Shown piece after piece: positions 10,181-41,326 of a DNA stretch of 64,000 nt; positions within the stretch are counted from its first letter, which is position 1, and each line of letters begins with the position of its first letter. Source of the stretch: Bugula neritina (Eukaryota; Animalia; Bryozoa); NCBI GenBank assembly GCA_964035545.1, contig OZ037769.1, forward strand, positions 15,592,633-15,656,632. The letters run 5' to 3'. Made by a program: the position numbers and the translations under genes. The notes under the pieces are model-generated. The model had not been told where the DNA came from and searched no databases. It saw nothing but the letters and a program-made list of their open reading frames with translations.

Positions 10181-10305
10181 GAATATATAGACCAGCTTCG
10201 CTGCCCTTTGTATTGGAATATATGGCAGGATATAGACTGGTTTCGCTGCTCTTTGTATTGGAATATATGGCAGGGTATAGACTGATTTTGCTGTCCTTTG
10301 TTCTA
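10181..10305 (+). repeat. ~45-bp tandem repeat overlapping the start codon and signal peptide of receptor 1
   Basis: GAATATATGGCAGGRTATAGACTGRTTTYGCTG..CTTTGT occurs twice in full plus one degenerate upstream copy. Confidence 0.75.
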
Positions 10306-13300
10306 TTTGTTCAGTCAATAGATGGACTGCCAGGTATGTAGTGTTTTCTATTATATAATAGTTGCGCAATAATAACTACTCTATCTCATTATAGTTAGTA
10401 CTTTAAAATATTAGCAGAATAATTAAGAACTGGGCAGACAACTACCAACAGTATCAAGGCTCATCTCTAATACTTATCATTGAAATAGGTACAAGTTCGG
10501 AAAAATTTCAATAACCCAAGTTGTTCAATTTTTTATGAATTCGAGGTGTGAATTAAATTTTTTGGCTAAAAAGCAAATTTCTTTGCTGTATTTTTTTAAT
10601 CTAGACCACAGGCTCTTCTTGATTTCTCTGTTACTGCTCATACTAATGGCATTATATTCTTACTTCTATCCATATGCACTCCTTCTTGGAGTTGATGTCA
10701 TATAGCATATGCAGCTCACTGAGCAGTGCTGCTACTCATAGTGCTATAGAAAACTTATATTATCTAAGTCACATGTCTTTCATACATTTCAATCTCTCTT
10801 TTTTGTTAAGCAAATTATGTCTTCACTTTTAGGGAACACCACTTTCTGTGAAACTCTGCCTAAAAACACAGTGTCGCTGCAATACAGTGGCAGCTCTCAG
10901 TCAGGAGTTATCTATAGCCCGAGATACTTAGTCAACTACAGGTCTGCCAACTTTAGCCGAGGATGTTACGTAGAACTCAGTTCTATACCTAAAAGATCTT
11001 ACGTCACCTTAAAGGTGAACTATAATGGGACACTTTCTTCCCCTGGTTGCTCACACAGATCTCTTTTCTATCTAAATCAGGATCCCTCTTATCAACTCGA
11101 CACCAATCTATGTACGAATAAGGACAATATGAGTGAAATTCACTCAGAAGGAATATTTATGGGAGCTAGTCTGAAACTGTTTGCCTTTGGATCAGATGCA
11201 CAGTTTACAATTCATTATACAAGTTAGTTCTGGTTTAAAGCCATAAAAAGCTGAAATAGTTAGAAGTTGAAGTAGCTAATAGTCAAATTGTAGTTATGCA
11301 ACTATAGTGAAGTTTGTAGTTAAAGTAGTTTGTAGTTAAAGTAGTTTGTAGTTGAAATATTTTGTAGTTAAAGTAGTTCGCATAGTTAAAGTAGCCTGTA
11401 TGGTTACAGTAGCTTGTATGGTTAAAGTAGTTTGTATAGTTACAGTAGTTTGTATAGTTAAAGTAGTTCGTATAGTTACAGTAGTTCGTATAGTTAAAGT
11501 AGTTTGTATAGTTACAGTAGTTTGTATAGTTAAAGTAGCTCGTATAGTTACAGTAGTTTGTATAGTTAAAGTAGTTTGTATAGTTACAGTAGTTTGTAGT
11601 TAAAGTAGCTAGTAGTTTGTAGTTAGAATAGTTAGCGTATGATTATGCCAACTAGGACATGCCAACTAGTTGGATAGTACAGATCAAGAGAGTGAAAACA
11701 TTTCATGCATCAACAATTGGCTATTTATCTGAAAGCTTTTCATAGCTTTTTTAAACCTTGTATAGCTGCATTGCTATAATGCAATAATATTATACTACAG
11801 CTAGTAATCTGATGAAGGAAAGGAATTTGTTTCTTATTCTTTGAAATAATGTTGTGATTTGCTACAAAATTGAGGCAACCAAAGCAATGAAGTGTCTTTC
11901 CTCTTGGATAGGTTCAAGTCAGTTGGAACTATAACATGACACATTCAACACAACTCAAATGTTTGATTGCAAATCATTGAGTGGTAATTGGTTTAACATA
12001 TTGCAGCTTTTTATGTAACCATTGAGTTGATTCTGTGAGTGTACAAGCTTATCTTATAACATTATTATTTGAAGAACAGTGTTATATGGTATTTGATAAG
12101 CTTGTTTCAGTGCTATTTTCTTCGTATAATTCGAAGTGTAAAAATGAAATTGGTTGATATATACGTATATTTGAAACATTTTAAAATATAATAGAGCTAT
12201 ATTTTGAACATCTATGTGATTGTGTTTTAGTTAGGAGTGTGTTTGTGTTCCCGAAAAAGCGGCCCATAAAGACAATAAACACAACGCAGCACCAGTCTGG
12301 TTACATCGCCAGCAACTGGACTCACTCCCCCAACAACAAATCTACAGATTCTACAATTACCCTTACGGGAATTCCGACTCTTGCAACCGTGACTATTGAA
12401 TTTATCTACTATGAGTTAGAAGATAGACTTAGCTGTCACAATGACACCATGCTAGGTGGCGCTAACAACTTGTGCTCCCTTTCAATAATAACTCACTCTG
12501 GTGGAGACGAATGTCTTAATTTAAACTCAATGCACAAAACCTGGAGTTATCTCATCAGCAATGAGACTCTTAGTTTTTCCTACAAAGCTGATGGTCGGTG
12601 CAAACAGAGCTATAAAGGCTTCCTTTTCAGATATACAGGTGAGCCTTATAACATGATAATAGGTAATTCAAACAGTATAGGCATAATTTTGTCAAAATTT
12701 GTCTTCTTTAGTGCTGCCTAGCTGCCTCGCTCTTATCTAATGGTTTAGATTATTTGGATCATTTGACCAAACATTGGCTAGATTTATTTAAGAAATTTTG
12801 ATAGAGTTTGCATATGTCTGTGATGTAAAAAATATATGTACTGTATCATCACATGTGCTGAGTATATATATAACATATATGCTGCAGTGTGTACATGTGC
12901 TGCAGTATATATATAACATATATGCTGCAGTGTGTACATGTGCTGCAGTATATATATAACATATATGCTGCAGTGTGTACATGTGCTGCAGTATATACAT
13001 GCATCAGCGACTATATATAAATAACTTTTTATTTTTGATTATTTTTCATTTAAACTTCTTATCTGAACTACTAACCATAATGCGATGTTACTTTATATAG
13101 TTATTGGAGTTGAAGAGGATGCAGGTTTGGGATATAGCAGCACACCTCTGGCTAACACTGCAGATCTATACACTTACTGGAGCACGCAGGATGCACCATG
13201 GGACAAGGGGGACAACTCAACAAACCTAAGCACTGATCCAGGTAATTAAACCTTCTACCATCTAGCAGCTTATAATGGTGCACTTATATAATGGTGTACT

Positions 13301-16300
13301 TGTAACTTGTTCATCATTTCAAGCTTTCATTATGCTTGAGCCGTACAGAATACACAATGTGTCATGGGTTTAAATATTGTCTTCCAGAAGATAGAATTTC
13401 ATAGCAGCAGTACCGAAGAAAGACTTTTGAATCTGATCTACTGCTGCTATGCCTTTCAGTTTCTGGTCTTTTCTATATGTATTATATCGAGTCTTATACA
13501 TGTATATGCAGGTACCATATCGAGGACACATCCTAGTTTAATTTTCATGCCGACAGTCTTGAAGTTTTCATACTTTTACACATTTAAAAATTGATTGACC
13601 CTCTCTTAATATGCAGCTTTTCTAAATCAGAGCGCTGAATCTACTTAGATATTGTTTAGTTACAACTGGTTGCTTATGTCAGCATGTGACCAATAGCAGA
13701 AGAGATAGAGGCAAATGGCAGCCATTAAGTGTGGTTAATATTTTACTTTCTTCCCTTAGTTGTCTGGTCATAACAGTTTTTTACAAAGTGATCTCATATT
13801 TATTAAATCAACTGGCTCCAGTTACAAGAATAACACCAGCATTTAGTTTCAGCATATAGTTAGTCAAACATAAAACAGCCAGAAATTTGGAAAGCTAGTA
13901 AATTCAGGTCAATGTTTATTTTTACAAACAATACTGTGACGTAACACACGTATTCTACAGGAAATAAGTGTACACTAGCTATTTATGTTTGTAAAAGATA
14001 AGATTAAACTGACAATCAATTCATTCCACAAAAAGCCCCTCTACAAACTCGATTATGAGGATTGAGAACTCTGTAGATGACGTCATGGCTGGTATCATCT
14101 GAACATCTCAAAACCTCCAGAGGCCATGTTTCTCTTCTACAGTTCCTTACTGTCACACCATAAGCGTTGATAGTAGCTTTAACACCAACAGCTGTGGGCG
14201 CCATGCCATCTGTCCAAAGTGGTAGTTGTGTTCCGCAACTTTTAGGTTTAGGACAGGAGTTGAGCATTCTGTTTCCAGCAGCACCAGTAAACCTGAACCA
14301 GCTGGTGTCTTGGTTGAGGTCACATGCATATCCATTCAGAGAGTTGGCACCACCTGCTCTGAAGTTGCTTCCATTATGCTCCATTCTCCAGGATTCGGTG
14401 AAGTTTATTGCAGTCAGGCATTCAGCTGGTTGGGGTGGTTTGATTGGTGTTGTGGTTGGTGTAGCCGTTGTGGCTGGTGTAGTGGTTGTGGTTGGTGTAG
14501 TGGTTGTAGTTAGTGTGGCCGTTGTGGTTGGTGTAGTTGTTGTAGGTGGTGTAGTTGTGACGTTGAGTACTTTGGTTGTTGTCTTTGAACCAATACGTCT
14601 GCAACTGATGAGATCTGCATACATCTGAGAGTATACAATCCTATCTGCATTCAGTTCATCTTCTGAGCTCAGCTGACGAGTATTTCTCTGATAGTGACTG
14701 TACATCGGACATTCGACAGCCAAAATATTTCTTAATACTTCAATCTTTAGCTTGTAGATACTCAGGTCCAACTCGTTAGAATCAGAAATAACTGCGGCAT
14801 AGCTTAGAGCTGCGATGGAAAGTAATGCGAAGAATAACAAGGCTCTCATGCTATAATCTGTACTAAAATGTGGTACTTTCAATCTACAGCCTGACTTACA
14901 GAAGTAAAGATAGTAGAGGAGATGTCTTTATATGTCCTTCACATCTGCTTGCTCCCAGATCCTATTACTATACATACTATAATATTATTCGTACCATATA
15001 GCATCATAAGATAGTAACATTGTTATATAAAAACGATCGTGATATGAAATTATAATTTTAGTTAGCTCAAGTAAACCTTGCACTTGCGTGTTTAAAATTG
15101 CGGCTGATTTCAGTAAGGTATATTTTAGATCAGAAGTTTTCTCAAAATGAAATGACAACTCCAATAAATCCTGTGACAGAAAGGCAAATACCAACAAAGC
15201 CCATGATGACGAAGATGTATATTATAGCATGTGGCATAGGAGCGGCTGGAGTAGTGTTGATAGCTATTATCATCTTGCTGGTGTGTAAACTTACCAGGAA
15301 ATCCTATAACTGGTGAGCGGATAACTCTCAAAGGTGTGACAACTCCATTACCTTGTCTCAAAGTGAGAAAACAGAGACATGTTTGCTGTTTGGTTTTAGT
15401 AAATCCTCTCAGACAAGAAGCAGGGAGTCCGACTGTGATGGCATCGATGTGAATATGAATGTTGCCTGTCACGCATCGGCCCAGGAGTTACAGCAAATAC
15501 TTTCCAGTTCAGGTGCGTAGTGAAGGTTTAAATAAACCTGTAGTATTCTAATATTGTGTAAGTCATTGAGGGATGGCTCTTTGAAAATCTTTGAAAATAA
15601 ATGGCTTTTTGAGGTAATGTTTATTTACTTGAGCAAATTGAAAGATGAACCTTCACTATTACAATACACTATTACTAATATGTATAACTATTGCTTTTTT
15701 TGTGTAACTATAATAGAACCATTAATTTTGTATTGACTTTGTAACTCCATTTACTAGCTGAATGTCTATAGTTACTAATTCACACTGATAGCGAGGTTAT
15801 ATATGCAGTAATGGAGAACTTGAGAAAAGCCTGTGTTCTAGATTAAAAGTGTAGCACAAGAAATTATGTTCCAGCAAGAATTTTGACCTTCGCCCCAAAC
15901 CAAAATTTGATAATGAAATTAAAGAGCTCAGGCTATCTCAATTTCTTCACTACTGCTCCTAAATGCTGATAGCTGTCATGCTTGCGTAGATGGTCAGATC
16001 CCAAATAGCCTGATCATTATACTAATAACCTAGTTATTATATTATTCCTATTGCTATCATATAACCAGTCATATATGTGCCATATGCAATATCTATATGA
16101 TCTAAGAGCTGCATGTAGGTATATAAATAACCTTTAAATTGAAGTACACTTTACAACCTGCTATATATTGTGACTGGGGCTACCTTTTTCCTGGTACAAA
16201 TGACAAAGGGAAACTTCCCTGTTTCTCCCACATACATGACGAATACCAAGTACAAAATACAAAACATGTGGGTATGAGTAAGGAGTGTTATCTGTTGGCA

Positions 16301-17067
16301 CATGGCGTTGGCACACAGTTACAGCTTTGTTTGGGCACACCTGGGATTTAGTCACTATTAGCAACTTTAGGAGCTGTTGCACCTTGCCATGTAGACTGAG
16401 ACTTGGGAATGAGAATGAAAATAGACTAACACTAAATAAGTCTGATGCCCTTCAGGAAGTTGAACAAAAGAAAACAGTGTGAATTGGATTTCTTAAAACC
16501 TATTATTTGAATTTTAGAAGTAATGTAATTATGATTGTATGATTTAGGGTATTCTATCTCCACCCACTACCACACTCTTGAAAACCCTTTGAGTAACAGA
16601 GGTGAGAAATTACCTCTCTGCCAATGTAGCCTTAAACTAATGACAGACAGCACTAGCGGTAGTGGTGCAGACGTGAGTGAATACAGAGTTGCAGACGACA
16701 CCCACTATAGAGTTGCAGAGTGTAAAAACTGTAAAGAGACAAGAAGCACATTGAGCAAGAAAACCGTGCCACCTTGTAACAACGCTAATGTTCTAATGCC
16801 TTCGAGGTTAGTAAAAAGAAGCTCTTGATGTGAGCATATGCACTTGGAACTTCCTAAGATATGGCTGTTTCCATAAAATAACTTGAGTTATCCCGCCTTG
16901 TAAACAAATCACCTTATATAGCAAGCAAACTGTTGCAATAGAAACGAGGGCATATATTTTGTAGACCGGGAGACAACTTCTACATGGCTGTCCTGCTGGA
17001 CAGCGTCCAACAACCCGAGGAACGAAAGAGAAACACCGACTCAGGTTTATATGAAATCTGCAGTTGA
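10267..17067 (+). CDS. Receptor 1: type I membrane protein with two divergent CUB-like domains, stalk, TM and Tyr-motif tail (~554 aa); exons 10267-10333, 10833-11222, 12231-12638, 13101-13241, 15129-15312, 15400-15512, 16548-16806, 16965-17067
   Basis: Signal peptide MAGYRLILLSFVLFVQSIDG. CUB-like motifs SGVIYSPRYLVNY..C..FTIHY and SGYIAS..TIEFIYYELE..C..YKGFLFRY, each on a phase 1-1 exon. TM YIIACGIGAAGVVLIAIIILLVC. Tail YHTL, YRVA x2, YMAV, YEIC. All introns GT-AG; exons sum to 1665 nt with an open frame. An upstream in-frame ATG exists at 10222. Confidence 0.8.
11311..11620. repeat. Intronic minisatellite, 18-bp unit (AGTTAMAGTAGTTTGTAT)
   Basis: Visible tandem array; source of the V/K/C-rich spurious ORF. 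Confidence 0.9.
12851..12998. repeat. Intronic minisatellite, ~44-bp unit (ACATGTGCTGCAGTATATATATAACATATATGCTGCAGTGTGT)
   Basis: About 3.5 tandem copies. Confidence 0.8.
14016..14849 (-). CDS. Secreted Thr-rich protein with C-terminal UMOD/GP2/OIT3-like D8C(D10C) domain, copy 1 (277 aa), nested antisense in intron 4 of receptor 1
   Basis: Single-exon ORF from [19 protein letters not shown]-terminal [19 protein letters not shown]...CGT..PLW..G...V..C....IY.....C...FC resembles the uromodulin/GP2 D8C consensus. TATAAA ~80 nt upstream (14927-14932); AATAAA downstream (13915-13920). Confidence 0.9.
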   Translation of the reverse strand: MRALLFFALLSIAALSYAAVISDSNELDLSIYKLKIEVLRNILAVECPMYSHYQRNTRQLSSEDELNADRIVYSQMYADLISCRRIGSKTTTKVLNVTTTPPTTTTPTTTATLTTTTTPTTTTTPATTATPTTTPIKPPQPAECLTAINFTESWRMEHNGSNFRAGGANSLNGYACDLNQDTSWFRFTGAAGNRMLNSCPKPKSCGTQLPLWTDGMAPTAVGVKATINAYGVTVRNCRRETWPLEVLRCSDDTSHDVIYRVLNPHNRVCRGAFCGMN

Positions 17068-20116: not shown

Positions 20117-21490
20117 TTAACGCCAGAAGTAGCTGTAACTATATAGATTGGTTTCGTGTGTTAAATTTTTGTTTTGTAAAAATTCGGCTTGAGTAGGTAA
20201 AAGCTACTAAGCGTGATAACTTGTATACGAGAGTAGCTTTAAAGCCAGTGTTATATATTTCAAAAGAATATTTATGTTAAGAAAATGTGGTGACTTGATA
20301 AATTATTTATTTTTCCATAAATTAAATTGGTTCAATCGTACAAAAGACTGAACAATATTGCGTGCTTTCCATCTACTATTATATATACATAAATGCATTA
20401 TATGCAGTTATTTTCGTTATTTACCTGCACAACTTATTCGTTATTTACCTGCACAACTTATTCGCTATATTAGTAGGCTATTTTGTAATACATATTTCAG
20501 CACAATTATTTGTCCCTTTTTGCATTTATATATCTTTCAAAGTTTTGCATCAAGTTAAAAGAATTTACTACTATAATAAAATATTACAATGATATGGTGT
20601 AGTCATTATTTCAATTATATACTATATAACTGCCTGTTAGGTGTCTAATATTAATATTGTGGTGGAAAAGGTTCTTCCAAATAAATTATATAATATACCT
20701 GTGTCCAAGCATTGCTGACACTCTAGCAAAAGGGTTTCCTGTTGCTGCGCTATCAGCCAACACTCCTTGATTAGCTTTGGCAGCAATATTTGTCACCATC
20801 ACTAGTATATTATGTTATTTGAAATGGTACAAAATGATGATTGCTTTCTTATAGGTTTTTACTAGAAAGTATCATAGTATAGTAATAATATATAACTGTG
20901 TAAAAAGCCAAGTTTTATAAAGGCTGGTATAGAATGTTAAAAAAATCATTTGTTTTAAGCGATGCTATATACGGGCCTGCTATAAACGTTATGGTACCTT
21001 CAAGGCTAATGCAATTATCTCTATTGACGTAAACATATGCTGCATCTTCAACTTCCCAAGATATGGCCTGTTTCCTTGAGGCTCTTTACGTCATTCTATG
21101 TGTAATCTCACCATGTGAAGTAACACACAGCCACTTATTGCAGGCCTAAGAGTTACTTTCATTATCTGGTGTTTGCATATTTTCCAAAAGCTTTACAATC
21201 TTGAAGATTTTCAACACAATATTTACCAAGTGACATAGATGGAGCACATTTATGGGACTTTTGCACACCTCAAGTAAAAATATATCATAAATTTTGAACG
21301 TCTGCAGGTTCCTAGTGAATACCTAGCAGGCTAACCAGTTGAATATATTGTGAAACAGGATCTTACATCAACATAATGAAGTTCCACTTTACAAACAAAA
21401 TTTATTCCTGGCTTCAAGCGTTCTTCTACTGTGATAAACCAAACTTTATAGTTGAACCAGTTTTTATGTAAAATCAAATTCTAATGGAAC

Positions 21491-21820
21491 TGTAGCATTG
21501 AATTAACCCAGCAGCTCCTGTGGTGTAATTGGTTAGTGCGCTTGCTTGCTTGCAAGCTGGAGGTCTGCGGTTCGAACCCGGTGAGGGCAATTATTTTTTA
21601 AACTAATTCAGCCTTTAGTGAAGTGTGGTAGTACTCCGAGGGAGTTGAGTGGCCAGGGGAGCCTGAATACTGAAGGAGTAGTAGATAAGCCAGTGGAGTT
21701 CAGAGAACTGGGTGGGATGTAGCGTTGGGTTTACTCAGTAGCCTCCGTGGTGTAATGGTAGCACACTTGCTTGCAAGCCAGAGGACTCAGGTTCAATTCC
21801 TGGTGGGGGAAATTATTTTT
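21491..21820 (+). mobile_element. Dimeric tRNA-derived (SINE-like) element, copy 1: tRNA-like units 21514-21589 and 21741-21811
   Basis: A-box TGGTGTAAT(T)GG, B-box GGTTCRAWYCC, partial acceptor stem and a following T-run in each unit; the anticodon arm is defective. Confidence 0.7.
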
Positions 21821-21984
21821 CAGGAACTACCAGAAGCAATTCTCAGTTTGACTAAATTTTACTGGTAAACAATAGAGCATAATATATATGCACAGCTCTC
21901 ACACTAGTCAGCGGGAATGATATGCACCTATAATATCATTATCTATTAGTTTAATGTTATGTATATTGTAGACCAGGAAATGAT

Positions 21985-22119
21985 TTAACATTTTATTTTT
22001 TGGCACAATTCCATCTTTAGCTTGTAGATACTCAGGTCAAACTCGTTAGAATTAGAAATAACTGCGGCATAGCTTAGTGCTGCGATGGAAAGTAATGTGA
22101 AGAATAACAAGGTTCTCAT
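21985..22119 (-). pseudogene. Truncated copy or mini-gene of the secreted family (44 aa: signal peptide + [26 protein letters not shown])
   Basis: Homology to the first ~35 codons of the full genes, then a novel tail and TAA. Upstream region with TATAAA is retained. Confidence 0.75.
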
Positions 22120-23278
22120 GCTATAGGCGGTACTAAAATGTGCAGTACTTTCATTCTACAGTTTGACTTACAGAAGTAAAGATAGTAGAGGGGATGTTTT
22201 TTATATGACCTTCACTTCTGCTAGCTCCCAGCTCCTATTACTACGCATGATGCAATGCCATTTCTATAATTGTAATAATTCTTTTGTTTATATATAAATA
22301 TTGTATCATGGCATTTATAATGATCAAACAGCATCTGTTCTCAAAACTGCTCCAGTATTTTTATTATATTGATCTTAACAGTCAATGTCAATGGGAATAA
22401 GTTTTATATGATACTAGAAACTATACACAGTATTTTATTAACTCAATAATGCCCATCAGTTAATCATGGTTACGTGATGGTATGGCGTCAGGATATGACA
22501 TCAGCATCAGAGTTGATGGTCGAGTTTAAAATTGGATTGCTGAGATAACTCCTTAAGAGATACTTGCTCAACCTATACAATAATATGTTTATTGTGTATT
22601 AGTTTAATAATGGTATGCATATGATTATACATATAACAGGCACACAGGTATGGTATATCATATTATATTGTTTTCTATAAATTCACCTTCTAATTTGACT
22701 AAAGGTTGTTGTTATTGAACACTGCTTACTCAAACCTTGGAGCAATGTATGTGAACCACAGGTGCTATGACCTCAAAGTTTTATATTCTTATATTTTTTG
22801 CTTTTCATCAATTATTCAAAATTAAAAACTATTTGATTTAAATTTAATGATTTGAATTTGTAATGTACTTGGGTGAAGTAATTGCACGTTCTCCTGAAGT
22901 TTCAAGTATTTATCAAATGCCTATTCACTTTAGTGAGAGCATGTAAAAAATGATGCAATTGAAAGTTATATTTACGCACGCATGCAGGTTTGCACATGCA
23001 CGCACACTCTCTCTCCCACCCAGCTTATCTGTTCATAGTGAACTATAACTTTTGTACTGTAGTGAGTAGATTAAGCTATTAGATTGATTGTGACTGTAAG
23101 CTCATTTCTATGCTTCACTTTAGTATCAACTGCCAATATATAATTGTTCAAAGTGAGACATGAAATAGACAGCTATTTGGCTATCAAATGCAAATCACAG
23201 TTTATTTAGAAAACTTATATGATTACATTATGTATTTCACTGTGTATTTATGTTGTTGTTATACATAAAAATACTCAG

Positions 23279-24091
23279 TTAATTCATTCCACAAAAAGCT
23301 CCTTGACAAACGTGGTTATGAGGATTGAGAACTCTGTAGATGAGGTCATGGCTGGTATCTGAGCATCTCAACACTTCCATAGGCCAGACTTCAGATTTAC
23401 ATGCATCGACATTAGCACCATACCCATCAATATTAACTTTTACACCAACAGCTGTAGGCGCCATGCCATCTGTCCAAAGTGGTACATATGTTCCACAGCT
23501 TTTATGTTTAGGACAGGAGTTGAGCATTCTGTTTCCAGCAGCACCAGTAAACCTGAACCAGCTGGTGTCTTGGTTGAGGTCACATGCGTATCCATTCAGA
23601 GAGTTGGCACCACCTGCTTTGTAGTTGTTTCCATTGTGTTCCCTTCTCCAGGATTCTGTGAAGTTTGTTGCAGTCAAACATTCAGCTGGTTGGGGTGGTT
23701 TGGTTGGTGTTGTAGTTGGTGTAGCCATTGTGGTTGTTGTAGCAGTTGTAGTTGTTGTGACGGTTGTGGTTGGTATAGTGGTTGTAATTGGTATGGTGGT
23801 GATGTTGAACGCGTTGGTTGTTGTCTTTGAACCAAGACGTCTGCAGCTGATGAGATCTGCATACATTTGAGAATATACAATCCTATCTGCTTTCAGTTCA
23901 TCTTCTGAGTTCAGTTGACGAGTATTTCTCTGATAGTGACTGTACATCGGACATTCGGCAGCCAAAATATTCCTCAGCACTTCAATCTTTAGCTTGTAGA
24001 TACTCAGGTCCAACTCGTTAGAATCAGAAATAACTGCAGCATAGCTAAGTACTGCGATGGAAAGTAATGCTAAAAGTAGCAAAGCTCTCAT
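23279..24091 (-). CDS. Secreted D8C-domain mucin-like protein, copy 3 (270 aa)
   Basis: Intact paralogous ORF. Confidence 0.9.
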   Translation of the reverse strand: MRALLLLALLSIAVLSYAAVISDSNELDLSIYKLKIEVLRNILAAECPMYSHYQRNTRQLNSEDELKADRIVYSQMYADLISCRRLGSKTTTNAFNITTIPITTTIPTTTVTTTTTATTTTMATPTTTPTKPPQPAECLTATNFTESWRREHNGNNYKAGGANSLNGYACDLNQDTSWFRFTGAAGNRMLNSCPKHKSCGTYVPLWTDGMAPTAVGVKVNIDGYGANVDACKSEVWPMEVLRCSDTSHDLIYRVLNPHNHVCQGAFCGMN

Positions 24092-26315: not shown

Positions 26316-26482
26316 CAGGAACTACCAGAAGCAATTCTCAGTTTGACTAAATTTTACTGGTAAACAATAGAGCATAATATATATACACAGCTCTCACACT
26401 AGTCAGTGGGAATGATATGCACCTATAATATTATTATCTATTAGTTTAATATTGTTATGTATATTGTAGACCAGAAAATGAT

Positions 26483-26617
26483 TTAACATTTTATTTTTTG
26501 GCACAATTCCATCTTTAGCTTGTAGATACTCAGGTCAAACTCGTTAGAATTAGAAATAACTGCGGCATAGCTTAGTGCTGCGATGGAAAGTAATGTGAAG
26601 AATAACAAGGTTCTCAT
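26483..26617 (-). pseudogene. Truncated copy or mini-gene 2 (44 aa)
   Basis: Same ORF as 21985-22119. Confidence 0.75.
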
Positions 26618-27771
26618 GCTATAGCTGTACTAAAATGAGGTGCTTTCTCTCTACAGTCTGACTTACAGAAGTAATGATAGTAGAGGAGATGTTTTTATAT
26701 GACCTTCACGTCTGCTAGTTCCCAGCTCTTATTACTACGCATGATGCAATGTCATTTCTATAAATGTAATAATTCTTTTGTTTATATATAAATATTGTAC
26801 CGTGGCATTTATAATGATCAAACAGCATCTATTCTCAAAACTGCTCCAGTATTTTTATTATATTGACCTTAACAGTCAATGTCAATGGGAATAAGTTTTA
26901 TATGATACTAGAAACTATACACAGTATTTTATTAACTCGATAATGCCCATCAGTCAATCATGGTTACATGATGGTATGGCGTCAGGATATGACATCAGCA
27001 TCAGAGTTGATGGTCGAGTTTAAAATTGGATTGCTGAGATAACTCCTTAAGAGATACTAGCTCAACCTATACAATAATATGTTTATTGTGTATTAGTTTA
27101 ATAATGGTATGCATATGATTATACATATAACAGGCACACAGGTATGGTACATGTATATCATATATTGTTTTCTATGAGTTCACCTTCTAATTTGACTATA
27201 GGTTGTTATTACTGAACACTGCTTACTCAAACCTTGTATGTGAACCACAGGTGCTATGACCTCAAAGTTTTATATTCTTATATTTTTTGCTTTTCATCAA
27301 TTATTCAAAATAAAAAACTATTTGATTTAAATTTAATGATTTGAATTTGTAATGTACTTGGGTGAAGTAATTGCACGTTCTTCTAAAGTTTCAAGTATTT
27401 ATCAAATGCCTATTCACTTTAGTGAGAGCATGTAAAAAAAGGATGCAATTGAAAGTTATATTTACGCACGCATGCAGGTTTGCACATGCACACACACTCT
27501 CTCTCCCACCCAACTTATCTGTTCATAGTGAACTATAACTTTTGTACTGTAGTGAGTAGATTAAGCTATTAGATTGACTGTGACTGTTATAAGCTCATTG
27601 CTATGCTTCACTTTAGTATCAACTGCCAATATATAATTGTTCAAAGTGAGACATGAAATAGACAGCTATTTGGCTATCAAATGCAAATCACAGTTTATTT
27701 AGAAAACTTATATGATTACATTATGTATTTCACTGTGTATTTATGTTGTTGTTATACATAAAAATACTCAG

Positions 27772-28593
27772 TTAATTCATTCCACAAAAAGCTCCTTGAC
27801 AAACGTGGTTATGAGGATTGAGAACTCTGTAGATGAGGTCATGGCTGGTATCTGAGCATCTCAACACTTCCATAGGCCAGACTTCAGATTTACATGCATC
27901 TACATTAGCACCATACCCATCAATATTAACTTTTACACCAACAGCTGTAGGCATGATGCCATCTGTCCAAAGTGGTACATACGTTCCACAGCTTTTATGT
28001 TTAGGACAGGAGTTGAGCATTCTGTTCCCAGCAGCACCAGTAAACCTGAACCAGCGGGTGTCTTGGTTGAGGTCACATGCATATCCATTCAAAGAGTTGG
28101 CACCACCTGCTTTGTAGTTGTTTCCATTGTGTTCCATTCTCCAGGATTCTGTGAAGTTTGTTGCAGTCAAACATTCAGCTGGCTGAGGTGGTTTGATTGG
28201 TGTTGTGGTTGTTGTAGTGGTTGTAGTTGTTGTGGTTTGTGGAGCGGGTGTAATTGTTGTGGCAGTTGTGTTTGGTATCGTGGTTGTAATTGGTATGGTG
28301 GTGATGTTGAACGCGTTGGTTGTTGTCTTTGAACCAAGACGTCTGCAGCTGATGAGATCTGCATACATCTGAGAATATACAATCCTATCTGCTTTCAGTT
28401 CATCTTCTGAGTTCAGTTGACGAGTATTTCTCTGATAGTGACTGTACATCGGACATTCGGCAGCCAAAATATTTCTTAGCACTTCAATCTTTAGCTTGTA
28501 GTAGTTCAGGTCCAACTTGTTAGAATCAGAAATAACTGCGGCATAGCTAAGTACTGCGATGGAAAGTAATGCTAAAAGTAGCAAAGCTCTCAT
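27772..28593 (-). CDS. Secreted D8C-domain mucin-like protein, copy 4 (273 aa)
   Basis: Intact paralogous ORF; C-terminal domain almost identical to copy 3. Confidence 0.9.
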   Translation of the reverse strand: MRALLLLALLSIAVLSYAAVISDSNKLDLNYYKLKIEVLRNILAAECPMYSHYQRNTRQLNSEDELKADRIVYSQMYADLISCRRLGSKTTTNAFNITTIPITTTIPNTTATTITPAPQTTTTTTTTTTTTPIKPPQPAECLTATNFTESWRMEHNGNNYKAGGANSLNGYACDLNQDTRWFRFTGAAGNRMLNSCPKHKSCGTYVPLWTDGIMPTAVGVKVNIDGYGANVDACKSEVWPMEVLRCSDTSHDLIYRVLNPHNHVCQGAFCGMN

Positions 28594-29480
28594 GCTATAG
28601 CTGTACTAAAATGAGGTGCTTTCTCTCTACAGTCTGAATTACAGAAACTATATTAGCTCAAAGATAGTAAAAGAGATGTCTTTATATGTCCTTCACATCT
28701 GCAAGTTCCCAGCTTCTATTACTACGCATACTATTTTGTTATTTTTACCAAAGCGCAAACTAGTGCATGTTAAAAAAACTCACGCAAGTTTATAGTCACT
28801 ATCCCTGTGAAAAAACCTGGATGGAAAGGCTTTTTTTTATTAAATCAGGCTAAGGACTTATTCAGATGGGGCACAGGAGTAATAATGACTGGATGCTCTC
28901 CCTATAAACATCACTAATGGCCTTTGTTGGCTCGAATCCATGACTAAGAGAGAGTAATTAGAGAGTAATACTATACTGTTATAATACATAGAAGTAATTC
29001 ATGGTAACATTCCAATGACATTCTGTAGGTTTTGTTGCCATGTGTGGACCAATGCTTGCGCTATGTGTTTTGAGGCATAATAAGCACTAAAGAATGGGCG
29101 TGGCATTTATTTTATTGACTCTATAAAGGTTAAAGGTTAATGCATGTTGACCATAAGTTAAAGTCAACACCAGAAGTAGCTGTAGCTATGGCTTGGTGCT
29201 AAATTTTTGTTTTGTAAAATTTCGGCTTGAGTACAGGAGAGCTACTAAGGGTGATAACTTGGGCTGAATTAGCTTTAAGACCAGTGTCATATTTCAAAAG
29301 AATATTTATGTGGGGACTTGATGAGTTATTTATTTTTCCATAAATTAATTTAAGGTTCAGATATTCAAAAGAATGAAAATTATTGTGTGCTTTCCACCTA
29401 TTACATAAAGGTATTATATGCAGTTATTTTCGTTCTTTTCCTGCACAACTTACTTACTATTAGTTTGTTATAATTTTGTA

Positions 29481-29529
29481 ATATATATATATATATATAG
29501 TGTATATATATAGTGTATATATATAGTGT

Positions 29530-29609
<80 letters not shown>
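29481..29609. repeat. (TA)n microsatellite
   Basis: Direct observation; absent from the paralogous positions in the two preceding units. Confidence 0.95.
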
Positions 29610-30884: not shown

Positions 30885-31064
30885 CAGGAACTACCAGAAG
30901 CAATTCTCAGTTTGACTAACTATTAAGCTAGTAAATAATAGAGCATATATATATTTATATATATATATATAATTTATATATAATTATATAGATGATTTGC
31001 ACCTATATAATATTATTATCTATTAGTTTAATGTTATGTATATAATTGTAGACCAGGAGATGAT

Positions 31065-31202
31065 TTAACATATTATTGTTTCTTGGCACAATTCAATCTT
31101 TACCTTGTGGATGTTCAGGCTCAACTCATTAGAATCAGAAATAACTGCGGCATAGTTTAGTGCTGCGATGGAAAGTAATGTGAAGAATAACAAGGTTCTC
31201 AT
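31065..31202 (-). pseudogene. Truncated copy or mini-gene 3 (45 aa, ends KVKIELCQETIIC)
   Basis: Diverged copy of the mini-ORF with an in-frame 3-nt indel and the same terminal TGT TAA. Confidence 0.7.
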
Positions 31203-33411: not shown

Positions 33412-34245
33412 TCAATTCATTCCGCAAAAGGCTCCTTGACACCGGCCGCCATATGGCTTGAGAACTTTGTAGATGACGTCATGGTTAATATCTGAACATC
33501 TCAGCACTTGCATAGGCCACGTTTCGGCCTTACATTTATTCTGGTTAGTATATTTACCTACAGCATAAGCGTTAATATTAGTTTTTACACCAACAGTTGT
33601 AGGCACGATGGCGTCTGTCCAAAATGGTGCATACGTTCCACAACTTTGAATTTTAGGACAGGAGTTAAGCATTCGGTTCCCAGCAGCCCCGGTAAATCTG
33701 AACCAGCCGGTGTCTTGGTTGAGGTCACATGCGTATCCATTCAGAGAGTTGGCACCACCTGCTTTGTAGTTACCTCCATTGTGTTCCATTCTCCAGGATT
33801 CTGTGAAGTTTATTGCAGTTAAACATTCAGCTGGCTGAGGTGGTTTGATTGGTGTTGTAGTTGGTGTGGCGGTTGTAGTTGGTGTGGTTTGTGGAGCGGG
33901 TGTAATTGTTGTGACGGTTGTGGTTGGTATAGTGGTTGTAATTGGTACGGTGGTGATGTTGAACGCGTTGGTTGTTGTCTTTAAACCAAGACGTCTGCAG
34001 CTGATGAGATCTGCATACATCTGAGAGTATACAATCCTATCTGCTTTCAGTTCATCTTCTGAGTTCAGCTGACGAGTATTTCTCTGATAGTGACTGTACA
34101 TCGGACATTCGGCAGCCAAAATATTTCTTAGCACTTCAATCTTTAGCTTGTAGATACTCAGGTCCAACTCGCTAGAATTGGAAATAACTGCGGCATAGCT
34201 TAGTGCTGCGATGGAAAGTAATGCGAAGAATAACAAGGCTCTCAT
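33412..34245 (-). CDS. Secreted D8C-domain mucin-like protein, copy 5 (277 aa)
   Basis: Intact paralogous ORF with the most divergent C-terminal domain. Confidence 0.9.
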   Translation of the reverse strand: MRALLFFALLSIAALSYAAVISNSSELDLSIYKLKIEVLRNILAAECPMYSHYQRNTRQLNSEDELKADRIVYSQMYADLISCRRLGLKTTTNAFNITTVPITTTIPTTTVTTITPAPQTTPTTTATPTTTPIKPPQPAECLTAINFTESWRMEHNGGNYKAGGANSLNGYACDLNQDTGWFRFTGAAGNRMLNSCPKIQSCGTYAPFWTDAIVPTTVGVKTNINAYAVGKYTNQNKCKAETWPMQVLRCSDINHDVIYKVLKPYGGRCQGAFCGMN

Positions 34246-35445: not shown

Positions 35446-36800
35446 CTACTCAATCTCACCATAATCACCCTCAGCATTCTCTGTGTTTGCTGGTGGCTCT
35501 ATTTCATAATATTCTCCTTCCTCCATCTCATGGCAGTTTCCTTCATTGAAACTATCTGCTTTCACTTCCGTATCTGTTACCGGGCCAACATGGTAAATAA
35601 GGTTATCAGAAGGTCTTGTCACGGTTTCCTCAGGCTTTTCATTATTCTCTACCATATGGTATACTCCTTCCTTTCCAGTAGTTTCTGCTTCTGCTTCAGG
35701 AGCGTCTGCCAAATAGTAGACACTGTCTTCTGCTAGTCTTGGTTCCTCCCTTTCTCTTTCTGGTGATTCTAGAGTGTGGTAATCTCCCTCCCCGTTAGTA
35801 TACGTTGGAGCTCTACTATCTTCTTCCTCAGGATCAGCTAGGCTGTACTGAACAGCTTCTTCTTGATTGTATCCAGCACCATGGTAGTCACCATCTCTGG
35901 TCTCCTCTTCTTCCAGATGGTAGATAGTGTTCTCAGCATTCAAATAAGGCTCAGTACAGGGTATAACTGAATATTCATCTTCTGCCATAAGGTTTCCAGT
36001 TCTCTCTCCTTTTACTTCTGGTTCCATGGAAGGATTCACATAAGAGTACACTGCAGCACTCCTTGATGTCTTCGGGGTATTGATGCAGTCATAGTCATTC
36101 TCCTCATTGGCTGACGATGAGCTGACGCAAAGCTCATAAGATGAAGCAAATTTTTTGTCGTCTGAAAAATGAAAATATCATTTCATAAAGTTGGTAAGAA
36201 AATGGCTTTTGTAAATTTTAAATTACTTTGCACTATGAATGTAGAAATATCTAGTTTTAGATTTCTCAAAGGACAATTAAAAATTAAAAAATGTTCAATT
36301 CTAGAATAATAAATAACAAAAAAATAAACTTTTAGGCTCAGCAGATATGAATCTGATAAGTTATTATATAGTGAAAATTTAGTGTATAAATGTGGTGCTA
36401 CTCGGGTTCATATTCAGTCCAATCTGCTTAAGTATTTAAAGTTAGTTTACAAATCAGTATAGCATTAGCATTAAACAACCCTAAGTGGATGTAACTAACT
36501 GTCTTATCATTCAATTTTTTACAATATTTTAAATTACTATAATAATGTAGCCATCGTAGGTTAATTTTATGTCCATCACAATTCAATCTGTATTGATATA
36601 AGTTACAAAACCTTAATACCAGGTTTTAGCTAGTACATCTTCAAACACTTGTGCTTTGTAGGAGATTGGTCAGTTCAAAAATAATTTCAGAAGTCAAACT
36701 TCAACAGTAAATGTTTAGAGCATCTACAGTAGCTGAGCATTACACAACAGAATATAGATTGAGAGTATAAGTATACTATAATAGAGGGTCCATTAAATGT

Positions 36801-36857
<57 letters not shown>

Positions 36858-39800
36858 GTATGCTGATTGTCAATCTAGTTGGAGTTCCAGCAAAGTAAAG
36901 TGCTCGATATCACGGGTGACAGAGCTAATATAATGTAGTGTGTTCAGATTGTTAATGATACATATATATTTTATTTAAAAAATCTTACACGACTATATAG
37001 TTTCGTGCAGTAAACTGCACTCCTCAGGTGTTAGACTAAAAATAAATAAAATCTATGAAGCATACCGATTATTCAAATTTTTACATAAAGAAAATTATCA
37101 TGCTAAACACAACGTAAAACGAAATGCAAACATAGTAGTGGATTTGGTGTTATCTATTAATTAATTAAATTGCTTTTTTTTCTAAAGGATTAAACTATAA
37201 AAGCTAGATGTTTGATGGAAAGGCTAATTTATAATAGGTAGTACTATGGTTGAGAGTTGTTAGTATTGTTATGTGATGTTGCCCAGGTAGTGCTTACGTG
37301 CATGTCTGCATGTGGATAGAATTTCATTTCTGTTATTAAGGGAAGATTTGCTGGGCTGGTATATTATGAAATATTTTTCCCATAGGCAGAGGTTGCATCT
37401 TTTAGTGACTTTGTTGTATGAGTTGGTCTTTTTCATAATTTTCCATGTTATGTCAAAATGGGTGTTCTTGTCTTTTAGTTTCCAGATATATTTGCTCAAT
37501 TCAGTATGGTTCTTTTTTGTTTTGTTGTTAAAAGTTGATTTGTGGTTATAAAATCTGGTTTTGAATTCTGTTTCTGATGTTCCCACGTAAGTCTGGGGTT
37601 GGCTGCCATCTTTGGTTGTAACTGTAGCTTGGTATATGATGCACTTTGTGAGGCATTTTACTGCACGAAACTATATAGTCGTGTAAGATTTTTTAAATAA
37701 AATATATATGTATCATTAACAATCTGAACACACTACATTATATATATATATATATATATACAATACAATATTGGTAGACCCACCTCTATACTGATAGACA
37801 CACCCACCTCCATACTTGATGCACCTACCCACCTCCATACTGATAGACACACCCACCTTCATACTGATTATAGACACACCCACCTCCATACTGATTATAG
37901 ACACACCCACCTCCATACTGATAGTCTCACCCACCTCACACTGATAGACACACCCACCTCCATACTGATAGACCCGCTCACCTCCATACTGATAGACACA
38001 CCCACCTCCATACTTGATACACCCACCCACCTCCATAGTTGATAGACCCGCCCACCTCTATACTTATAGACCCGCCCACCTCCATACTGATAGTCCCACC
38101 CACCTCCATACTGATAGACACACCCACCTCCATACTGATAGACACACCCACCTCCATACTGATAGACCCGCCCACCTCCATACTGATAGACCCGCCCACC
38201 TCCATACTGATAGTCCCGCCCACCTCCATACTGATAGACACACCCACCTCCATACTGATAGACACACCCACCTCCATACTGATAGACCCGCCCACCTCCA
38301 TACTGATAGACACACCCACCTCCATACTGATAGACACACCCACCTCCATACTGATAGTTGTTGACAGTCTCTGGTGGCTGGCTTCCTTTCCTTCTCTTCT
38401 TCAGTTTTCTAGAACATATTCAACACATGCATTTTCAAACTTTGATAATAATGAGTATTAATTGCTGTTTTATTGTACAAGTTATAATTATATAGTATAT
38501 AATATATATAACCATAATATGTATCTAGCAATACTATTTTTACATAATGCTTTTATCTAACAATTATACTAATTTGCTATAGAGTGTTTCTAGCTTTCTA
38601 TAGCAATACTATATGAGTATATATATAGATCTATGATCTATAACAATACTATATATATAGAGTATTTCTAACAACACTAACCTTCTATAAAGAATCACTA
38701 ACACTCCAACAATAAGTACTACACCAAGAACAGCCACACCCACAGATAGCCCTATAGTCAGAGGGGGGACACTTTCCTGGGAGCTGGCATCTACAATCAA
38801 ACAATACTTTGAAATATGTGAATACAGAATAAATTCTATGAGTACTTCATACTAATATAAGCTAGCATCAGCATTGCATACAGCAAACACTCTATTTTAT
38901 AAATACAGACTTAATTTTATGAAGTATTTTATTATAATAAATTTAAAAACATATAGAGAAATAAAACAGTGAGTGCTACGCTGATAATAGATCGCTTCAG
39001 TTCAAAAGAGGTAGTTGTGAAGTTAGCACCGCTAAACAACAGTTTTAAACGCCCACTTTTATAGCTGGGGTATAAAATTTTAAACATATCACAGCTCACC
39101 AAGTTTTGGTGTAGCAGCTGGTTCCAGTTCTGTACTCAGCCAGTCTGTTGAGACTATATCATCAGATGTAAAGTCTGGAGTGAAAGGTTCACTGGTTGTG
39201 GTTACAGGTTCGCTGGTTGTGGTTACAGGTTCACTGGTTGTGGTTACAGGTTCACTGGTTGTGGTTACATGTTCACTGTTTGTGGTTACAGGTTCACTGG
39301 TTGTGGTTACAGGTTCACTGGTTGTGATTATAGTTGTAGCATTTCGTGAGGAACAATTTGGTAGACTGTTATTTGTCATATGACTCCCTGAAATTGTCAC
39401 ATATATATTATAGATACAGAATCCTATAGTATTGGTTTTGCAATTTAGTAAAACTCAATCAACCAAGGCCGGTGTATTATTATTAAATACTTACAGTGAT
39501 ACAGGAAGTGAAATCCATATGATATATATGAATTTGGAAGCCAACTGAATGTTATGGATGATTTGAAGTTAATAGGTCCAAAGGGTATGGGGGTTTGGGG
39601 TGAAACAGAAAATAGCTGGCGGCCATCAACAGCTATGACTAGCTGAGCTCCATTTAATGATTGATTTCTATTCCAAATAAAATATAAAATCTCAAGTTTG
39701 ATTTTGGAGTTACAAGGATTATGTAGTGTCAGTGAGTAGTTGTAATGATGTCCTAACAAAGCGTTGGGGTGTTCAGGGTGGCTAAAAATATAGCCCTCTC

Positions 39801-41326
39801 CAAATAACCTTGATGTCACCTGTGGGAGAACGTTATATGGTTGCTTAGAAATTTCCCTCTCAAGACTTCTGTAGGGTATAACTGCAAGAGAAAGATAGCA
39901 TGCAGGTAGAAATATATTATTCATATAATACATGTAGCCTCTACTGTTAAGACTATAAATTAATCTATTATTTTCATATAATACATTTTAATGTAAATTA
40001 AATTTGGCCTGTTTTTTATTATAAGCATGCATGAAGTGGGGGTTACGGTTTTTGTTCTGAACATTAATGGCAAGTGTTTTACTATTCCTCTCATAACTGA
40101 GTAAATAGCTTCATGCAGCTATTTAAATGTACTTTGAATTATAAAAGTTTCAGAATGTAAATCAACTATTAGATTGTGTATAAGCGCACCTGTTAGTTCT
40201 ATATCAAACTCAAACTTTTTCTTAGAGTGCAGAGTGATTGTAAAATTGTCTCCTTCATAATAGGCTATGGTGAAAATCTCCCCTTCATCTTTCTCGCACA
40301 GCCATGTGTAGAAACCAATGTAAATGTACGCATCAGTGCAATCTGCAACTTTTTTTCCTTGGACTTCAAACGTATTTACCGTATATTGGACGAACACAGG
40401 GTAGTCTACGTTCTTCACAGTAATCTGACAGTTTATACTATCTCCCTTCAAATTAATGACAGCTTCCGTGACATTGCTATAACTCTTCCCGGCAGCACAT
40501 TCTAGCTCTACAGTAAAGACACAACTCTACACAGCACAGCAATGTAACTGTGAGGAAAGTGAGAAAAGTGCAATAACACTGTCAATATATAACTGTGATA
40601 AAGGAGGGGAATAAAGGTATAGCAGTTGACAGCAGAATGCGGCAGCCAATGATTGCGGAAGAAGAAAATTAGTAGAATTACAATAGGAAAGTCTCCAATG
40701 TATCAAAGCTAAATTACCCTAAGTTTATAAACTAGAAGGTACACTATATAATTTAATATACCAGTAATCTAAGGGGTAAGGAAACACAAATCCTGTAACT
40801 AGTTGTTACAGTAGAGATTCAACTTTCTCCAATCTCAAATTCCGGCTTTAAAAAGTTTTTTCACTTTGGCTATTCAGGTAAAAGTTTGGGTCTACGAATC
40901 ATGAAATCATCGTTCACCAAAAATAATCACCGTGCACCACAAACTAGCAGCATGTTATATGCAATACGAAAAAACTTCACTGTCAGTTTATTAACACAGA
41001 AATATACTGTATCTATATAATCGGATTGTTCTATAAGCAGCGTTGAGTTAAGAGTGAATAAGTGCAGTATAGTTTGGACTTTGCAAGTTTAGAGTTAGGG
41101 GACCTCTAACTTGGCGCTGCTTATAGAACCACGCTATATACTCAGACTAACAGCTCATGGCATGCAAAGCAGACCCCAAGTCTTCAATACTAAAATGGAC
41201 TGAAGGATTACATTACATATTGGGGCTTGTAGTATAATATATATTTACTATACCTGTCTCTCCTCTAACTGTAGTCTGAAGTAAGCTGATCCATAGTCCT
41301 AGAACAACATACAAGAAGATGACCAT
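35446..41326 (-). CDS. Receptor 2: type I membrane protein with two divergent CUB-like domains, TTSEPV mucin stalk, TM and acidic Tyr-rich tail (~651 aa); exons 41326-41254, 40507-40190, 39881-39495, 39387-39100, 38790-38682, 38408-38344, 36161-35446
   Basis: Signal peptide MVIFLYVVLGLWISLLQTTVRG. CUB-like C..NCQITV..FEV..DCTDAYIYI..LCE..FTITLH and EGYIFSHPEHPN..YSLTL..IKLEI..GFHFLY. TM IGLSVGVAVLGVVLIVGVLVILY followed by RRKLKKRRK. ~260 aa tail with 21 Tyr. GT-AG junctions; 1956 nt in frame. Confidence 0.85.
36803..36855. repeat. (TA)n microsatellite
   Basis: Direct observation; flanks the Penelope-like insertion. Confidence 0.95.
36928..37743 (-). mobile_element. 5'-truncated Penelope-like retroelement: GIY-YIG endonuclease C-terminus (37269-~37658), 3' tail and 87-bp inverted terminal repeat
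   Basis: Translation CLTKCIIYQATV..QTYVGTSETEFKTRFYNHKSTF..HTELSKYIWKLK..CNLCLWEKYFII..LNNRNEILSTCRH is typical of the PLE GIY-YIG domain. 36928-37014 is the reverse complement of 37657-37743. Confidence 0.9.
36983..37035 (-). ncRNA. Minimal type I hammerhead ribozyme in the Penelope-like element tail
   Basis: Minus strand reads UCUAACAC-CUGAGGA-GUGCAG(UUUA)CUGCAC-GAAA-CUAUAUAG-UC^GUGUAAGA: intact core, 6-bp stem II, palindromic short stem III, 7 of 8 bp in stem I. Confidence 0.85.
37775..38357 (-). repeat. 24-bp VNTR (CTATCAGTATGGAGGTGGGYGKGT), ~24 copies, spanning the exon 6/intron 6 boundary of receptor 2
   Basis: Thirteen exact-length units from 38357 to ~38040, then degenerate 23-27 bp units. 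Confidence 0.95.
39186..39325 (-). repeat. Coding 21-bp repeat (TTSEPVT) in the receptor 2 stalk exon
   Basis: About 6.5 copies of ACAACCAGTGAACCTGTAACC. Confidence 0.9.

Follow-up and report, generated by a model that had tools for sequence, protein, structure and literature searches.

Two lineage-specific families, secreted D8C-mucins and candidate CUB-type receptors, side by side on chromosome C5 of Bugula neritina

Does a pair of candidate membrane receptors that brackets a row of genes for secreted glycoproteins amount to a recognition unit, or are two gene families simply neighbors? The question is raised by a 64,000-nucleotide stretch of the bryozoan Bugula neritina (C5:15592633-15656632; hereafter the window) on the 17.7-Mb chromosome C5 of the 216-Mb genome; the published assembly measures 216.00 Mb in nine chromosomes (PMC11480708). 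Coordinates below are window positions unless given in Mb. A preliminary description had read the window as a linked unit of two convergent receptor genes, R1 and R2, and an array of secreted ligands or decoys, D1 to D5, with a D8C domain of the type found in uromodulin (UMOD) and GP2. Such a unit was not supported by our analysis. The reading that we favor, with a probability of roughly 0.6, is that two lineage-specific families stand side by side here through a single local event. Both the D8C-mucin family and the receptor family are real and new to description, and both are new versions of already known protein kinds.

The closest named proteins to those of the window came from B. neritina and from the bryozoan Watersipora subatra. 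Comparison contigs were taken from samples labelled 'symbiont metagenome' (L002 and L016-L018) and from the 2020 NCBI draft of B. neritina (VXIV02001762.1; L029). These contigs were only 84-88% identical to the window at the nucleotide level, and L029 and L002 were ~91% identical to each other; therefore, we treat them as sibling lineages of a species complex.

The claim of five intact secreted D8C genes was confirmed. All are single-exon open reading frames (ORFs) on the minus strand, each encoding a signal peptide, an N-domain, a Thr-rich linker and an 8-Cys C-domain, as follows (lengths in amino acids, aa):

14016-14849, minus strand: D1, D8C-mucin gene nested in R1 intron 4; nesting retained in L016 and L029
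18160-19218, minus strand: D2, D8C-mucin gene with the longest Thr-rich linker; 352 aa
23279-24091, minus strand: D3, D8C-mucin gene
27772-28593, minus strand: D4, D8C-mucin gene, a recent D3 duplicate (synonymous divergence, dS, 0.10)
33412-34245, minus strand: D5, D8C-mucin gene; D8C/D10C-like domain at 33415-33840; covered by RNA-type contigs of runs X7 and X13

The five proteins measured 270-352 aa, with a helical, highly conserved N-domain of ~65 aa holding two Cys, a linker of differing length, and a C-domain of 140 aa with eight Cys, and they stopped 3 residues past the last Cys. A Pfam scan of D1-D5 gave D8C and mucin only, with no ZP module, EGF domain or glycosylphosphatidylinositol (GPI) signal, and the whole-protein plan of UMOD and GP2 (EGF, C-terminal ZP and membrane anchor) was not found. 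A profile of 26 C-domains (alignment A2) was run with hmmsearch against PDB sequences and found only UMOD (5.6e-11) and GP2 (2.6e-9), at profile positions 29-137. An AlphaFold2 (AF2) model of the D5 C-domain, built with this alignment, reached a predicted local distance difference test score (pLDDT) of 93.6. When this model was searched with Foldseek, all 12 matches at E<=0.001 were GP2 or UMOD (best E 7e-9; TM-score 0.66-0.69, 26% identity) and the next match had E 1.0. Most database homologs of D1-D5 bear a precomputed match to the Pfam family PF23283 (UMOD/GP2/OIT3). The earlier assignment of the secreted proteins to the GP2/UMOD type was thus borne out by profile homology (E 6e-11) and by fold matches to GP2/UMOD alone, and on the predicted structure the C-domain is a genuine UMOD/GP2 D8C/D10C decoy-module fold.

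The D10C domain has been defined by ten conserved Cys in five disulfides, with a fold that is a known bacterial-adhesin decoy (PMC8930769). The Bugula domain covers the whole D10C extent as delimited there, but nearly all of the 26 domain sequences had eight Cys, a count that departs from this definition and agrees with the older count of eight. In the alignment to UMOD, a Tyr stood at the UMOD C5 position and a single Cys at UMOD CC, and the C5-C7 pair appears to have been lost. Decoys of the UMOD/GP2 type work through a high-mannose N-glycan in the groove, to which a bacterial lectin binds. In the Bugula domain, an N-x-S/T sequon lay 6 residues past the first Cys in 23 of the 26 sequences. 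The FimH-binding glycan of GP2 (N65) sits two residues past that protein's first Cys (PMC8930769), and the parallel between the two sites is a lead, not a result. D1-D5 are predicted to be small secreted surface or mucus glycoproteins that show glycans as a barrier or as lectin/adhesin decoys, and the displayed glycans possibly include a conserved N-glycan beside the first Cys of the D8C domain.

The array belongs to a large bryozoan family, of which this genome has at least 27 D8C loci, spread over seven chromosomes and in several cases clustered in tandem; the five other clusters that were examined had the same three-part architecture. A six-frame genome search with PF23283 gave one sub-threshold match only and is too insensitive for a family count. 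One member of 613 aa (L019 608-2449; C5:16913107-16914948) has a linker of ~46 P-S-N-W-T repeats with NWT N-glycan sequons; it keeps the N-domain and the D8C domain at its ends, and the N-glycan linker replaces the Thr-rich O-glycan mucin. Within the window, the array also contains the following duplication unit and relics:

20117-24992 and 24649-29488, unstranded: two copies of a 4.9-kb duplication unit, 93.7% identical, each with one relic and one full gene; not present in the sibling lineages
21985-22119, minus strand: relic 1, 44-aa ORF
26483-26617, minus strand: relic 2, 44-aa ORF with a translation identical to that of relic 1
31065-31202, minus strand: relic 3, 45-aa ORF

The relics had been listed as three mini-genes. 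ORFs of 44-45 aa were indeed present, but they proved to be truncated 5' D8C copies, each reproducing a D8C promoter together with ~36 codons from the start of the gene. At the site of relic 3, sibling L002 had decayed to only 15 matching codons. The window holds five D8C genes versus three in the sibling lineages (L002 and L029). The D2-like copy of L002 matched in two pieces overlapping by a few bases and its called product was a 169-aa fragment; its frame may therefore be disrupted. Array size shifts by segmental duplication, and the array would grow and shrink via unequal crossing-over that leaves 5' relics behind.

The array had also been called diversifying. Ratios of nonsynonymous to synonymous divergence (dN/dS) between paralogs were estimated by the Nei-Gojobori method for each gene region, and pairs among D1-D5 gave 0.09-0.97 across all regions. 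The top values fell in the Thr-rich linker; inside the D8C domain the second half was highest (dN/dS <=0.82), and the N-domain and first half of D8C were strongly conserved. The maximum in sliding windows of 20 codons was 0.94, and D5 compared to its sibling ortholog gave 0.31. Because every value in the paralog, sliding-window and sibling comparisons was below 1, diversifying selection was not shown; these ratios point to purifying to relaxed selection on the array. Synonymous divergence was smaller in the 5' part of the D8C genes, which suggests gene conversion there.

R1, which encloses D1, was modeled in eight exons:

10267-10333, plus strand: exon 1, ATG and signal peptide, ending in phase 1; 22/22 aa identical in L016
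10833-11222, plus strand: exon 2, CUB-like domain 1 with 4 Cys, phase 1-1; sibling dN/dS 0.35
12231-12638, plus strand: exon 3, CUB domain 2, phase 1-1; alternative donor after 12662
13101-13241, plus strand: exon 4, short stalk, phase 1-1
15129-15312, plus strand: exon 5, transmembrane (TM) helix, phase 1 to 2; acceptor possibly 18 nt upstream
15400-15512, plus strand: exon 6, short and juxtamembrane, phase 2 to 1; dN/dS 0.14
16548-16806, plus strand: exon 7, tail carrying HYHTLENP once and YRVA twice; dN/dS 0.28
16965-17067, plus strand: exon 8, C-terminus LYEICS and stop; 32/33 aa identical in sibling

All eight exons are kept as ORFs in sibling contigs. The public annotation of a sibling assembly (P0033) agrees on how exons 2 and 3 are joined and puts the donor of exon 3 at 12638|12639. 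Compared to the sibling, exon 5 had 86% aa identity (dN/dS 0.34) and exon 8 had 7 synonymous changes (dN/dS 0.03); across the R1 exons, dN/dS was 0.03-0.51 (domains 0.35-0.51), with one figure pooling codon counts over separate exons. Judged by this constraint on its exons, R1 appears to be a live gene. In place of this one gene, the public annotation of L029 has two 'hypothetical protein' models, of 226 aa and 212 aa, one on each side of the nested D1. A 45-bp tandem repeat (2.6 copies, 10185-10301) holds the R1 start and signal peptide, with an upstream in-frame copy of the MAGYRL start, and an 18-bp minisatellite (16.7 copies, 11317-11608) lies in R1 intron 2. The sibling tail (L002 9180-9458 versus window 16550-16804) is longer by an 8-aa insertion, in which an acidic SEY motif is repeated; as this adds a Tyr motif, the number of such motifs differs between lineages.

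Whether R1 is a CUB receptor could not be read from its own exons, which were searched one by one together with those of R2. None of the four ectodomain exons matched CUB in a Pfam scan that allowed E values up to 10, a search of PDB sequences with the first domains of R1 and R2 gave chance-level matches only, and hhalign of the four modules, all against all, gave nothing. The R1 and R2 modules were not alignable to each other, much as described before. A single-sequence AF2 model of R1 domain 1 was all-beta but unusable (pLDDT 44.7). The language-model (atlas) features of this domain were nearest to CUB clusters (0.94), with CDCP1-type proteins among the neighbors. Against a low-diversity CUB profile built from 13 repeats of P0030, R1 domain 2 alone reached 64% in hhalign, and among 1.8 billion representatives it matched only its sibling ortholog and a protein with 13 CUB repeats (E 8e-4).

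Paralogs from the genome carried the assignment. A search with R1 domain 2 found weak paralogs on C5 at 13.41-13.46 Mb and 4.46 Mb. Those at 13.41-13.46 Mb consist of two domain exons, one or more stalk exons, a TM exon and Tyr-rich tail exons, and the same gene layout was seen at C5 13.46, 6.08 and 10.26 Mb. The second-domain exons of the paralogs and one first-domain exon scored 21.9-32.1 bits against Pfam CUB (PF00431), passing its cut-off of 21.4. R1 domain 2 matched the paralog profile A3 at 96% in hhalign (E 2e-9), and genome-wide A3 found 9 domain-2 exons, all on C5, R1 among them at E 7e-8; R1 domain 1 matched the domain-1 profile A5 at 56% (E 1e-4). In cluster member L023, the TM exon donor is in phase 2 and the domain-2 exon donor in phase 1. 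The exon plan shared by the family (phase 1-1 domain exons, a TM exon ending in phase 2 and a Tyr-rich tail) was found in both R1 and R2. Given the A3 and A5 matches and the paralogs that pass Pfam CUB, sequence comparison places R1 as a diverged member of a family of CUB-CUB-stalk-TM-Tyr-tail receptors, which was seen only in Bugula in the database search. The earlier label 'CUB-like' therefore holds for R1 by way of paralog profiles; for R2 the resemblance was non-significant. The family comprises a tandem cluster at C5 13.41-13.47 Mb (L020-L024) and dispersed members at 6.08 Mb (L025) and 10.26 Mb (L026). Receptor genes of the cluster have repeated short stalk exons, and L020 contains, besides a retroelement whose ORF is integrase-like, the second CUB exon in two copies next to each other.

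R2 was modeled in seven exons on the opposite strand:

41254-41326, minus strand: exon 1, ATG and signal peptide, phase 1; 22/24 aa identical in L018
40133-40507, minus strand: exon 2, first ectodomain module with 4 Cys; CUB-like pattern only
39495-39881, minus strand: exon 3, second ectodomain module with 1 Cys; CUB-like pattern only; end 39495 set by hand
39100-39387, minus strand: stalk exon with seven 21-nt TSEPVTT repeats, phase 1-1; 3' end from RNA joints
38682-38790, minus strand: TM exon, phase 1 to 2; RNA joints
38344-38408, minus strand: juxtamembrane exon of 65 nt, phase 2 to 1; RNA joints in X7, X9 and X13
35446-36161, minus strand: last exon, acidic tail of 237 aa with 19 Tyr, DYHTLESP and C-terminal YYEI-x12-YGEI; acceptor from RNA joints

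R2 is a live gene that is spliced in RNA contigs. Three of its introns (36162-38343, 38409-38681 and 38791-39099) were confirmed by RNA-type contigs from three studies, and the flanking intron bins had no coverage. All boundaries in both receptor genes were GT-AG, and the intron phases agreed with the plan reported earlier (1,1,1,1,2,1, then 2, in R1; 1,1,1,1,2,1 in R2), as did the tail motifs HYHTLENP in R1 and DYHTLESP in R2. A 24-bp variable number tandem repeat (VNTR) of ~24 copies (37778-38357) starts where the 65-nt exon has its donor. The RNA-type contigs, which come from three runs, all splice from the first unit of this repeat (joint 38344|36161), with no use seen of the repeated donors downstream. 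In R2 intron 6, a high-copy repeat element occupies 36800-37800 (summed contig depth up to ~1e5 in run X4) and contains a 133-aa ORF (37272-37670, minus strand) that is GIY-YIG-like by eye and matched no Pfam family. Upstream of R2, a 15-bp minisatellite of 24.7 copies (41639-42008) is also present in L018.

Both receptor tails are enzyme-less and Tyr-rich. Immunoreceptor tyrosine-based activation motifs (ITAM) were taken as YxxL/I-x6-8-YxxL/I and inhibitory motifs (ITIM) as [SIVL]xYxx[ILV]; in immunoreceptors, such motifs are phosphorylated and then bound by tandem SH2 proteins. The C-terminal YYEI-x12-YGEI of R2 fits only a loose x6-12 ITAM spacing, and THYHTL in the R1 tail is, as a sequence pattern only, similar to an ITIM or to an immunoreceptor tyrosine-based switch motif (ITSM). 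R1, and probably R2, belong as diverged members to a Bugula-specific family of type I receptors built of CUB, CUB, stalk, TM and Tyr-rich tail, and they would presumably signal by Tyr phosphorylation and SH2/PTB docking at YHT[LV]E.P and the C-terminal YxxI pair. Homologs of R2 exon 2 were found only in sibling lineages, at 73-87% aa identity. In R2 domain 1, up to 27% of residues differed among three lineages (dN 0.04-0.16, dN/dS 0.24-0.56). In these comparisons between lineages, the exceptional polymorphism and positive selection on ectodomains by which an allorecognition locus of the Hydractinia ARC or Botryllus fuhc type is recognized were not seen in R1 or R2, whose dN/dS values were all below 1.

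Some of the evidence weighs against our reading of two neighboring families, and it concerns R2, the D8C domain and the adjacency itself. The ectodomain of R2 had no significant similarity to CUB or to R1, and what ties it to the family is the exon plan, a short tail motif and its position beside R1. R2 could be an independent type I gene that acquired a common modular layout and a short SH2-type motif by convergence, an explanation that we consider rather unlikely. None of the ectodomain comparisons was significant, the genome search with A3 did not find R2 at E<=0.001, and in the atlas R2 scored 0.82 with domain 2 features at chance level; moreover, extracellular modules are as a rule encoded by phase 1-1 exons. 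However, R1 and R2 agree in six intron phases, among them those of the less common 1-to-2 TM exon and of a 2-to-1 mini exon, and the two genes adjoin each other. A degenerate DNA pattern for YHTLExP occurred twice in 216 Mb, in the R1 and R2 tails only (control, 3 hits), a 6-of-7 match to the motif arose in 14 of 2000 composition-preserving shuffles (p ~0.007), and the variant YHTVEEP is present in the tail of the family member at 10.26 Mb. Two places, on C4 and C2, with V/I/M variants of the motif were rejected as chance matches with no receptor context. The R2 tail was collinear with that of a cluster member, non-significantly (E 0.086), and the profile matches of R2 were weak but in the correct CUB register (domain 2 versus A6, hhalign 19%, E 1e-3 over 36 columns; domain 1, 1.6%). 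Paralogy of the two receptors, as claimed earlier, is thus probable by exon plan and YHTLExP, with ectodomain similarity of R2 to R1 not significant, and we regard R2 as quite likely a member of the R1 family.

Other points concern the D8C proteins. Tested singly against PF23283, D1-D5 scored 16.4-19 bits (E 0.0016-0.01) and missed the gathering cut-off of 27 bits; the UMOD N275 position aligned to a sequon-free stretch; and the function of these proteins is inferred from fold and architecture alone. They could instead be structural, as proteins of cuticle, larval adhesive or extracellular matrix cross-linked via the 2-Cys N-domain and D8C, and not immune decoys. The missing N275 site, the strong conservation of the N-domain and the first D8C half, the large family size (usual for matrix and secretome proteins) and the two small Cys end domains around a glycan brush, which recall gel-forming and matrix glycoproteins, are all consistent with this possibility. 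We still think it unlikely, as the searches turned up neither a ZP module nor any other known module for polymerisation and the experimentally known roles of the D10C fold are decoy or binding only. The idea that R1 and R2 are recognition receptors and the D8C proteins their ligands or decoys, in a co-adapted cassette that would serve mucosal defence, the handling of symbionts or allorecognition, is harder to sustain. A D8C motif scan of 68 kb around seven other receptor-family loci found none, whereas the same scan found five in the window, and no CUB-like or Tyr-tail ORF of at least 95 aa lay within 10 kb of five other D8C clusters. In Watersipora, D8C genes have unrelated neighbors: a tyrosine phosphatase, a DPF/PHD gene or a further D8C gene. 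By synteny in related species, a check that the preliminary description had proposed, the linkage is kept in sibling Bugula lineages only. Starting at SLU7, L002 and L029 were collinear with the window through R1 with its nested D1, then D2, as far as the D5 region, with D3 and D4 absent there, but these lineages are too close for their linkage to be informative. Two points count on the other side: ORF scans of the other D8C clusters would overlook receptors made of small exons, and the chance of a receptor locus lying within a few kb of a D8C locus on the 17.7-Mb chromosome is ~2% by a rough estimate, so the adjacency is mildly unexpected and could mean something. The cassette would also fit the tight convergent arrangement, which includes the nesting of D1 within R1 and persists in three Bugula lineages; the Tyr-rich tails with an ITAM-like end pair in R2; the known decoy role of the D10C fold (PMC8930769); the variation of D8C copy number between lineages; and the coverage of both R2 and a D8C gene in RNA-type runs X7 and X13, although contig depth cannot reveal co-expression. 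All dN/dS values were, however, below 1. Taken together, these data leave receptor-D8C coupling unsupported rather than refuted; the ligand or decoy model is improbable, and its strongest form, in which receptors with ITAM-like tails sense the state of D10C glycoproteins or the microbes or conspecific tissue bound to them, is more improbable still. Two lineage-specific families that came to lie side by side remain our preferred reading.

Outside the two families, the left neighbor in L029 matched Pfam Slu7 and corresponds to an ORF at window 7150-7806. A 206-aa multi-pass membrane ORF (62587-63207, minus strand), with weak sub-threshold Pfam matches to EXPERA and Rft-1, is unrelated to the locus.

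Among known systems, CDCP1/Trask and DCBLD-type proteins, which have type I topology, combine CUB ectodomains of divergent sequence with tails that lack an enzyme but abound in Tyr docking motifs. The Bugula receptors resemble them in plan, a resemblance to which the atlas offers a lead only, and differ in domain number and tail motifs. Neto, SOL-1 and LEV-10 have a CUB-CUB ectodomain, a single TM helix, an LDLa module and no poly-Tyr tail; the CUB-CUB ectodomain and single TM helix are common to the Bugula receptors, whereas the LDLa module and the lack of a poly-Tyr tail are theirs. In evolutionary behavior the Bugula receptors resemble Hydractinia Alr (PMC9546547), likewise clustered type I receptors with ectodomains too diverged for ordinary sequence detection, but these are Ig-like rather than CUB and are not known to have an interposed array of secreted genes; in that system, extreme polymorphism of the alleles and their genetic linkage to fusion phenotypes have been proven. 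The closest resemblance of the Bugula array is to the zebrafish omcin cluster, which is UMOD/GP2-like, lineage-specific and copy-variable among related species, with one member that protects against bacteria (PMC11415648). Both are tandem lineage-specific clusters of D10C genes with variable copy number; however, omcins have five D10C domains, EGF IV, ZP and GPI, whereas the Bugula proteins have one C-terminal 8-Cys domain, an N-domain and a mucin linker. With GP2 and uromodulin themselves (PDB 7P6R and 7PFP; PMC8930769), the Bugula domain shares the predicted fold, profile homology and a sequon soon after the first Cys, and it differs in having eight rather than ten Cys, no UMOD N275 sequon and no ZP filament scaffold.

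Our literature search found no paper joining Bugula with uromodulin or D8C, and among the papers listed by a search on allorecognition, none dealt with such genes in bryozoans. A coupling of receptor and ligand, though so far unsupported, would be of much greater importance if true: the cassette would then give a first molecular entry to self/non-self or symbiont recognition in bryozoans, and would pair the D10C decoy module with a signalling receptor outside vertebrates. The two families have significance of their own. The D8C-mucins present a stripped-down UMOD/GP2 decoy fold outside vertebrates, with a helical cap, a glycan brush and an 8-Cys D10C domain but no ZP filament. The family has expanded to 27 genes or more in one bryozoan, and its linkers are built for O-glycans in some members and for N-glycans in others, which makes it a simple system for asking what D10C does alone. 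The Bugula-restricted CUB-CUB Tyr-tail family with YHT[LV]E.P supplies candidates for lineage-specific immune or adhesion signalling in Bryozoa, a phylum with almost no molecular immunology.

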